Positions 41,983 to 44,373 of a stretch of DNA of 57,986 nt are shown here, one piece after another. Made by a program: the position numbers and the translations under genes. The stretch lies in NCBI GenBank assembly GCA_000388065.2, contig KB932205.1; one strand, 5' to 3'. The notes under the pieces were generated by a model. That model was not told the DNA's origin. It made no database searches and saw only the letters and a program-made list of their open reading frames with translations. Within the stretch, counting starts at the first letter, position 1. The number at the start of each line of letters is the position of its first letter. Source of the DNA: Fonticula alba ATCC 38817. Its lineage: Eukaryota > Protista > Nucleariida.

Positions 41983-44373
41983 TCAGCGACGCTCGAGCTC
42001 CGCCTCGTCGATGTCCATCTGGTCGTCGTCAAGGTAGATGCTCGAGGACTGGGGAGAAAGGGCCAGAGCGAGGGAGGGAGGGAGAGAGAGAGAGAGAGCA
42101 AGTTAGTCAGTATGCCCAACGGAAAAAAGGGGGGGGGGGGCAGAGGGTGGCCCAGGCGCACCATCTGCCAGCACTGGATGACATTGTCGTCGGCGGTGGA
42201 GGCCATCATCATCGGGATGTTCGGGTTCCAGGAGATGTCCGACACGCGGTTGGTGTGCCCACCGTGGATGAACTAGCCAGTGGCCCAGAGGGTCCGGCGG
42301 GGGGACGGCCGCGCGCGCGGGAGGTTGGGGGTGGGGGGACAGAGGAGAGGCTGTGTCAGAGGCCGCTGCTGCAGGTGCATCGCACACGAGGAGCCGAGGA
42401 ACATGTAAACCCAAATATACACACCATCAGCTCCGGCGGGCCATCGTTCGCCTCCTCGGAGGTCTGCTCCTCGCCGATGCGCGACATGTCCCAGATGTGC
42501 ACACGGCGGTCGTGCGCCGCCGAGGCCAGGATGGTCTCGTAATGCGGCGACCAGGCCACCTGCAGCACCTCCCCCGAGGGGTACTCGCAGGAGTGGAGCT
42601 TCTGCTTGAGGTTGCGCATGTCCCACAGGGCAACGCTCTGTGGATTGAATTCGCCCAGGGGGCGCGGGGGACGCGTGTGTGTGTGTGTGTGTGTCAATAG
42701 AGGAGTCTGGCCAGCTTCCCGAGGGACAGGGGGGAGGTGACGGAGGCGGCACAGGAGCAAGGCAACTCGCGCAAGGGAGCCAGCAGGTTGTCGCCCACAT
42801 ACCTGGTCGCTGGAGCCGGTGGCCAGGAGGTGCTCGGAGAAGGGATTAAAGGAAAGGGAGTTGACGCAGTCATCGTGGGCCGTCACGGTCAGAGTATTCT
42901 TGCGGGTCCGGCTGTCCCACAGCCGAAGGGTCCGGTCGTCGCCCACCGAGCCGAACAGGTGCGCCTGGACGTTGTGCCACGCCACCTCGCCCACCTCCTT
43001 GGTATGCCCCTCGAAGGTGAAGAGAGGCGCCAGCGAGCCGGCACCCTCGGGCCCGGCCTCGGCGGCTGCCGCCACATCCCACAGACAGATGAGCTTGTCA
43101 TCCGCCGAGGAAAGCAGCAGGCCCGACTGGTTGCGGTTCCACGAGAGACCGTAGCTGGGTGGTTCAGACGGGGGGAGTTGGTGAGAAGAAAAAAAGAAAG
43201 GAAAAAGAAGCACCGAAAGAAGAGGCACGGTGCGAAATCAAGCAGCCAATGCGGGAAAGAAGGGACAGTGGAGGAAGAAAAGAAAAGAAGAGACCCCCGG
43301 CCCGCGATGCAGGCCGGCCCGAGTTTGGCCGCCCTTGCCTGCTGTTACCATGAGCAGGGGGGGGGGGGGCGGGTCTCGTCGGGCGCAAGGACGCACCCCT
43401 CCTTCGAGTGCCCGGTCAGACGCATGGTGGGCCCCTTGGTGTCGTCGCGCGCCGCGAACTTTGTCGTGTCAAACAGGTGCACCTGTCCGGAGATGGTCTT
43501 GGTGGCGATCATGTTCGGGTTCTGCGGCATGTACCGCGCGCGGTTGATCTCCCCCTCATGGGGAATGCACTGCTCGATGGTGATCTTGGTGCGACGGGGC
43601 TCGGCTGGGCAGTGGAACGAGAACAAGGGGGCGGCGCGAGGCGGCGACCGAACACAAGGCAAGGGCGAAAGGAAGGCCGACGAGGCGGCGTCAGCGGCAG
43701 CCAAGCTTCCGGGGGAGCTGCGGCAATGGAAGAGAAGGAAGGAAAGTGCCCCACAGCGAACGCACCACCGGACTCCTGGCGGCGGAACTGGAAGACCGTC
43801 GGGTCGTTGGGGGACACCTCAACCGAGGGCAGCTCCAGCTGGGCAATCATCAGCATGTTCTCCGAAGCGGACTCCGGGTCGGTGTGCGTGCCGAGGATCA
43901 TCCACGACGCTCTTCCGATCTACTGGAAGACCGTCGGGTCGTTGGGGGACACCTCAACCGAGGGCAGCTCCAGCTGGGCAATCATCAGCATGTTCTCCGA
44001 AGCGGACTCCGGGTCGGTGTGCGTGCCGAGGATCATCCGGTGGATGGTCTCGTTGGGGCCCCTGCAAGGAGGAGCGAAAAGCGGTCAGCGGACATGTTCC
44101 ACGGGCAGGGCCCAGAAGGGGAAGAGGGCCCAGGGAGGAGGGCCCAGGGAGGAGGGGAACGCCGGCGATTGCCGCACGGCCAACGCACTCGGTCATCTCC
44201 GGCAGCCACTCAATGGTCAGTGAGGGCCAGCTGAGGGCCTTCATGATGACCATGTCATACAGGAAGGGGGTGTTCTTCTTCCAAGTCTTGTACTCGTCGT
44301 TGATGCGCTTCTCGGCAGCCACATCGGGCAGGGAGCCGGCATTCGGCTCTGGAGACATGCTTCCGGTGGACAT
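41983..44373 (-). CDS. RBBP4: Histone-binding WD40 protein RBBP4/RbAp48/MSI1 (assembly carries an artefactual internal duplication)
   Basis: [20 protein letters not shown]...[10 protein letters not shown]; MILGTHT; [24 protein letters not shown]; LTGHSKEG|YGLSWN; [20 protein letters not shown]; [10 protein letters not shown]...DGPPELM|[18 protein letters not shown]. Confidence 0.96.
43787..44038. repeat. 117-bp direct duplication (43787-43903, 43922-44038) flanking an Illumina adapter fragment
   Basis: Two identical copies; the junction sequence CACGACGCTCTTCCGATCT occupies 43903-43921. Confidence 0.97.

Follow-up and report, generated by a model that had tools for sequence, protein, structure and literature searches.

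Adapter contamination of public genome assemblies has been documented, and microbial genomes were treated in one study whose text, searched by term, mentions neither duplication nor scaffolds nor contig ends (BMC Genomics 2024;25:1033, PMC11536531). In vertebrate assemblies, false duplications have been classed by their effect on gene annotation, and the classes include the 'false exon gain' (Ko et al., Genome Biol 2022;23:205, PMC9516828). The locus described here lies in a 57,986-nt stretch (hereafter the window) of contig KB932205.1, from the assembly GCA_000388065.2 of Fonticula alba ATCC 38817, and has features of both. As in the documented contamination, synthetic Illumina adapter is found in a deposited assembly, its presence is systematic (212 sites) and it lowers local accuracy. 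Unlike the microbial cases, the Fonticula remnants are short (about 19 nt) and internal, each examined one is tied to a tandem duplication of 29-257 nt, and the organism is a eukaryote. As in the false exon gain, an apparent assembly error duplicates coding sequence within one gene, with a risk of false annotation. Unlike the vertebrate cases, the Fonticula errors have a scale of about 0.1-0.26 kb, part of an exon is doubled rather than a whole one, and an adapter tail would block the detection of the overlap. The combination seen in Fonticula, in which perfect copies flank a short internal adapter remnant, is a special case of these known problems.

The gene affected in the window encodes a histone-binding protein of the RBBP4 type. 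RBBP4/RbAp48, Drosophila p55/Caf1, yeast Hat2 and S. pombe Mis16 are histone-binding WD40 subunits of the CAF-1, NuRD, PRC2 and HAT1 complexes. Like them, the Fonticula gene has a CAF1C_H4-bd domain and WD40 repeats; with one 135-nt period taken out it is an ordinary member of the family, and its WD40 part is about 40-45% identical to that of animal RBBP4/7.

The RBBP4 gene and its duplicated exon segment

The large downstream open reading frame (ORF) of the locus carries WD40 repeats according to Pfam, and a protein search with it retrieved a public protein of 431 aa (P0001), named "histone-binding protein RBBP4 [Fonticula alba]" in NCBI/UniRef. This protein matches the minus strand of the window at 100% in eight blocks from 44373 to 41986 (44373-44188, 44060-43923, 43787-43767, 43605-43396, 43153-42803, 42637-42425, 42272-42162 and 42048-41986). 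Its Pfam matches are CAF1C_H4-bd (PF12265, E = 8e-25) and WD40 (PF00400, E = 7e-33), and the N-terminal CAF1C_H4-bd domain followed by a WD40 propeller is the arrangement of RBBP4/CAF-1 subunit C proteins. The coding sequence at 41986-44373 was thus assigned to an RBBP4/CAF-1 p48-type histone-binding WD40 protein by the exact mapping of P0001, Pfam and PDB.

The exon pieces were searched one by one rather than as a joined, spliced model, and full-length comparisons were made through P0001. On the separate pieces, positions 1-35 of the CAF1C_H4-bd profile fall on the upstream exon and positions 40-69 on one copy of the duplicated segment, within a 46-residue piece (44060-43922). P0001 carries the duplicated stretch once, and this single-copy protein covers profile positions 1-69 in one stretch. 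In PDB, alignments of the 46-residue piece cover residues 60-90 of human RBBP4 and 64-94 of Drosophila p55, and yeast Hat2 is matched as well; the segment is single in each of these proteins. The best PDB match, 9koh_K, is an engineered fusion in which RBBP4 occurs twice.

As reported in an earlier note made from the letters of the window, which proved correct to the base on this point, the site consists of two identical 117-bp copies and a 19-mer at 43903-43921. The first copy (43787-43903) and the second (43922-44038) are identical at 117/117 nt (100%), with a start-to-start spacing of 135 nt. Between them, the plus strand at 43904-43921 reads ACGACGCTCTTCCGATCT, which is identical to the final 18 nt of the Illumina TruSeq universal / Read 1 primer oligonucleotide (P5 arm). 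The final C of the first copy is also the 19th adapter base, so that the identity with the adapter 3' end is exact over 19/19 nt (43903-43921), and the preceding base mismatches the adapter. The adapter 18-mer occurs once in the window even when two mismatches are allowed (0.00 expected, 100 shuffles). A second adapter site was searched for in the 58-kb window and not found, and the Nextera transposase end gave no match there with up to two mismatches. The site thus shows what is expected of a false duplication, namely identical adjacent copies with a non-genomic joint.

The two junctions of the spacer differ in kind. At 43921/43922 the adapter 3' end, GATCT, adjoins the second copy, just as it would adjoin the insert of a library molecule. 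On the minus strand the junction runs from exon into AGATCGGAAGAGCGTCGTG, which is the standard Read 2 read-through pattern of a short fragment. At 43903/43904, where the first copy meets the adapter, the adapter is cut at about 19 nt, a type of junction that is impossible in a library molecule. Removal of any one 135-nt period gives the single-copy sequence, and the deletion of 43904-44038 put forward in the earlier note does so.

The insertion amounts to 117 + 18 = 135 nt, that is 45 codons, and the reading frame is kept. On the minus strand the duplicated peptide is present twice, reading on to ...PTVFQ, and the peptide quoted in the earlier note was found in both places. That note had held that the frame of the gene is broken; no shift occurs, and what the 45 extra codons introduce instead is an in-frame TAG stop (43922-43920) at the joint between exon copy and adapter.

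Tandem duplications of exon segments exist in nature, and a 135-nt period divisible by three would suit a genuine partial exon duplication whose spacer happened to look like the adapter or had a natural origin. Such a duplication would be expected to keep an ORF or usable splice sites through both copies and to have a natural spacer; here a stop codon stands at the joint and the spacer matches a synthetic oligonucleotide exactly over 18-19 nt, a match not expected by chance in the window. There is no divergence between the copies, the segment is single in homologues as well as in the public protein of the locus, and similar remnants stand at 212 sites genome-wide, with both adapter arms represented (see below). 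A genuine duplication is therefore vanishingly improbable.

Since P0001 is single-copy, the public gene model must skip 135 nt. A script run over the 118 equivalent 135-nt excisions found GT..AG ends in only one of them, 43952-43818 on the minus strand (gttgag/GTGTCC...GGTTGAG/gtgtcc, with the donor at 43952 and the acceptor ending at 43818). As this is the sole canonical way to skip the period, the public record most likely reaches the correct protein through a spurious 135-nt GT..AG intron at 43952-43818, which corresponds to C5:1,430,754-1,430,888 on the contig; this reading is drawn from the protein and the splice-site script. The earlier note had warned that annotating the locus as a pseudogene, an extra exon or an insertion would be wrong. 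The error at the locus is real, but the public model already gives the correct protein, and the damage is evidently a false intron and not a pseudogene call.

Adapter remnants across the assembly

The whole assembly (31.3 Mb, 214 contigs) was searched for both arms of the forked adapter. The P5-arm 18-mer has 105 exact copies (49 forward, 56 reverse), and the P7-arm read-through sequence AGATCGGAAGAGCACACGT(C), searched as 19/20-mers with at most one mismatch, has 98. The 13-nt adapter stem is present in 212 copies, about half of them in each adapter arm, and longer P5 remnants of 24 nt were found 10 times with at most one mismatch. The reversed-pattern control gave 0 copies for each of these four patterns. 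Adapter sequence from both arms is thus present at many unrelated loci, as expected of adapter contamination, and the earlier identification of the RBBP4 spacer as a TruSeq adapter remnant holds, given its exact 3' end and the recurrence of both arms about 212 times genome-wide. Remnants so short and internal are presumably below the thresholds of screening of the NCBI VecScreen/FCS-adaptor kind, and hence probably escaped it.

Seventy loci were fetched, and 65 distinct sites were measured in the first 50 of them together with the window. At all 65, the GATCT end adjoins genomic sequence directly, and the sequence that follows the adapter 3' end also stands directly upstream of the adapter. 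Copy length ranges from 29 to 257 nt (median 159), and the two copies are 100% identical at 60 of the 65 sites; the remainder differ by a first-base mismatch or in homopolymer length. Three sites appeared to have no duplication, and BLAST found the copies there, with a first-base mismatch or a homopolymer length difference. The match to the adapter extends over 18-23 nt, with a mode of 19-20, and is 19 or 20 nt long at 52 of the 65 sites. The site in the RBBP4 window is a typical member of this genome-wide artefact class. That the duplication is false, as the earlier note had concluded, is borne out by the flanking duplication at 65/65 sites and by the single-copy state of the RBBP4 family, the Pfam profile and the public protein of the locus.

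An adapter-trimming threshold was considered as the source of the 19-nt tail and rejected: the 105 and 98 sites with at least 18-19 nt cover nearly all of the 212 stems, and there is no spread of shorter remnants.

Taken together, the 117-nt copies, the exact 18/19-nt adapter end, the genome-wide recurrence and the single-copy homologues argue that the duplication in RBBP4 is a computational assembly artefact and does not represent the organism's DNA; judged on the sequence data, we give this reading a probability of about 0.93. In this artefact, an adapter-tailed piece would have been pasted whole into the contig.

A bench chimera, in which two overlapping library fragments were ligated or PCR-joined via adapter, sequenced as one molecule and faithfully assembled, would also put adapter between two copies. 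Adapter-mediated chimeras do occur in libraries, and the joint between GATCT and the second copy is the natural adapter-insert junction. Yet such a molecule should contain the full-length adapter or an adapter pair, whereas the tails are about 19 nt at 65/65 sites, and chimeras usually join unrelated loci, whereas all 65 sites are self-joins with an offset of 29-257 nt. A single chimeric molecule would moreover not outvote normal coverage in the consensus 212 times, and a chimera gives no reason for the regular spacing of contig ends described in the next section. This origin is very improbable.

Paired sites and the probable origin of the artefact

Many of the sites form inward-facing adapter pairs that bound a piece of 265-668 nt (piece S). 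The first A nt of this piece are a second copy of what precedes the left adapter, and its last B nt are a second copy of what follows the right adapter. P5/P7, P5/P5 and P7/P7 pairs were all seen. Real library molecules are P5/P7 only, and the P5/P5 and P7/P7 pairs therefore indicate that S is not one sequenced library molecule and that its ends are graph tips instead. Piece S is a small assembled piece, both ends of which are read-through tips. The P5/P5 and P7/P7 pairs also led us to reject the idea that each pasted piece is one library molecule read over its full length. Rolling-circle or concatemer reads were rejected as well: in the pairs, it is the start of the piece, not its end, that recurs in the left flank.

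The unduplicated middle of S measures 20n+1 nt, with values near 41, 61, 81, 101, 121, 141, 181, 201, 221, 301, 321 and 361. In the first set of loci all 16 pairs with such a middle obey this rule; it does not apply to a seventeenth, L048, a double-tip junction that has no unduplicated middle. In an independent second set, fetched as a test, 13 of 16 pairs fit within -1 to +2 nt, against 20% by chance, and the three misfits may be due to mismatches that shortened the exact-match measurement. The distance between the flanking contig ends thus follows a 20-nt grid, a regularity that points to software and not to a biological cause.

Two double-tip junctions were seen, L036 (G000:C2:3144855-3145000) and L048 (G000:C5:246566-246614). 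Their adapter remnants face away from each other and are 107 nt and 9 nt apart, respectively, with flanking duplications of 222-257 nt. At both of them, the two abutted pieces each carried an adapter tail.

The artefact could have arisen as follows. Some Illumina fragments would have been shorter than the read length, so that reads ran into the adapter. During local reassembly or contig extension, one piece would then have ended in about 19 nt of adapter, perhaps because a de Bruijn unitig at k = 20 keeps this much of a sequence that is common to many reads. At the RBBP4 site, the adapter-tailed piece would truly have overlapped its neighbour by 117 nt; the tail would have hidden the terminal nature of this overlap, and the piece would have been set directly against the neighbour. 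Left untrimmed, the overlap would stand in the contig twice, as perfect tandem copies separated by the adapter remnant. For the paired sites, windows in 20-nt steps may have been excised from a once-continuous contig and the locally reassembled piece put in their place. At the RBBP4 site only one end of the pasted piece is marked by adapter, and its other boundary therefore cannot be located. The earlier note had attributed the site to an untrimmed read assembled into the contig. The adapter origin of the spacer is confirmed, but this account is too simple: the tails of about 19 nt and the 20n+1 spacing point to an adapter-tailed patch or contig end whose overlap was left untrimmed.

The adapter-tailed piece need not have been a patch. 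In a plain scaffolding join, independent contigs, one of them with a read-through tip, would have been abutted at a zero-length gap by a scaffolder or gap closer. At single sites like that in RBBP4 this predicts the same anatomy and could apply; double-tip junctions such as L036 and L048 exist, and gaps are common in the scaffold. It does not readily account for the paired sites, where the doubly adapter-bounded pieces all measure 265-668 nt, with none of 0.7-1.5 kb in the 3-kb loci, and where 20n+1 middles would be unexpected between independent contigs. We consider this variant of the assembly artefact unlikely as a general account, and the duplication is false under both.

Under the preferred reading, in which a locally reassembled piece was pasted in, the shared anatomy comprises adapter tails of about 19 nt, pieces of 265-668 nt, duplications of up to about 257 nt and 20n+1 middles. 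It might be the fingerprint of one bug in a widely used short-read assembler, in its module for local reassembly or gap patching, an idea that we advance tentatively and hold at somewhat less than even odds. The Fonticula alba assembly probably came from an ALLPATHS-LG-type pipeline. If the idea is right, other public genomes from the same pipeline version would carry hundreds of such false duplications, which could be found by a simple pattern (adapter 13-mer plus flanking direct repeat) and corrected automatically.

Consequences for the reference and further observations in the window

The public Fonticula alba reference contains about 212 adapter remnants, and each one examined comes with a false duplication of about 0.1-0.26 kb. 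A gene hit by such an error acquires an in-frame stop, a frameshift, a spurious intron or a repeated stretch of peptide. Because work on how fungi and multicellularity arose relies on Fonticula as a key outgroup, its gene models enter into many comparative studies. The sites are easily listed, and can be fixed by deleting one period at each. The RBBP4 locus is of no biological interest in this respect; its value lies in drawing attention to about 212 errors that can be corrected.

The window is a gappy short-read scaffold, with eight N-runs of 10-563 nt in 58 kb (5914-6208, 10260-10290, 27270-27665, 32380-32389, 33224-33233, 37024-37586, 40711-40805 and 51746-51786). Being a scaffold of short contigs, it is expected to have further local errors near the gaps.

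A second exact tandem duplication, free of adapter sequence, was observed at 4932-5320. Its copies, 4932-5119 and 5133-5320, are 188 nt long with a period of 201 nt (67 codons); the spacer is the 13-nt sequence 'cgagggggggggg', and the second copy leads into a long poly-G tract. The minus-strand ORF that contains the duplication (3270-5411) is long and includes the ALAS catalytic region, and the repeat is in frame. The likely start codon and an N-terminal Cys-Pro motif are both within the repeated segment; a Pfam search with the duplicated N-terminal piece gave no match. This duplication is probably the same kind of butt-join artefact, formed at a homopolymer, and it could inflate counts of the heme-regulatory CP motif for this ALAS. 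Close to RBBP4, on the plus strand, a long ORF (46580-47200) reads in the ORF list like the 60S export adaptor NMD3 (...CEDCHRVEAKDMWRACVQVRQKV...).
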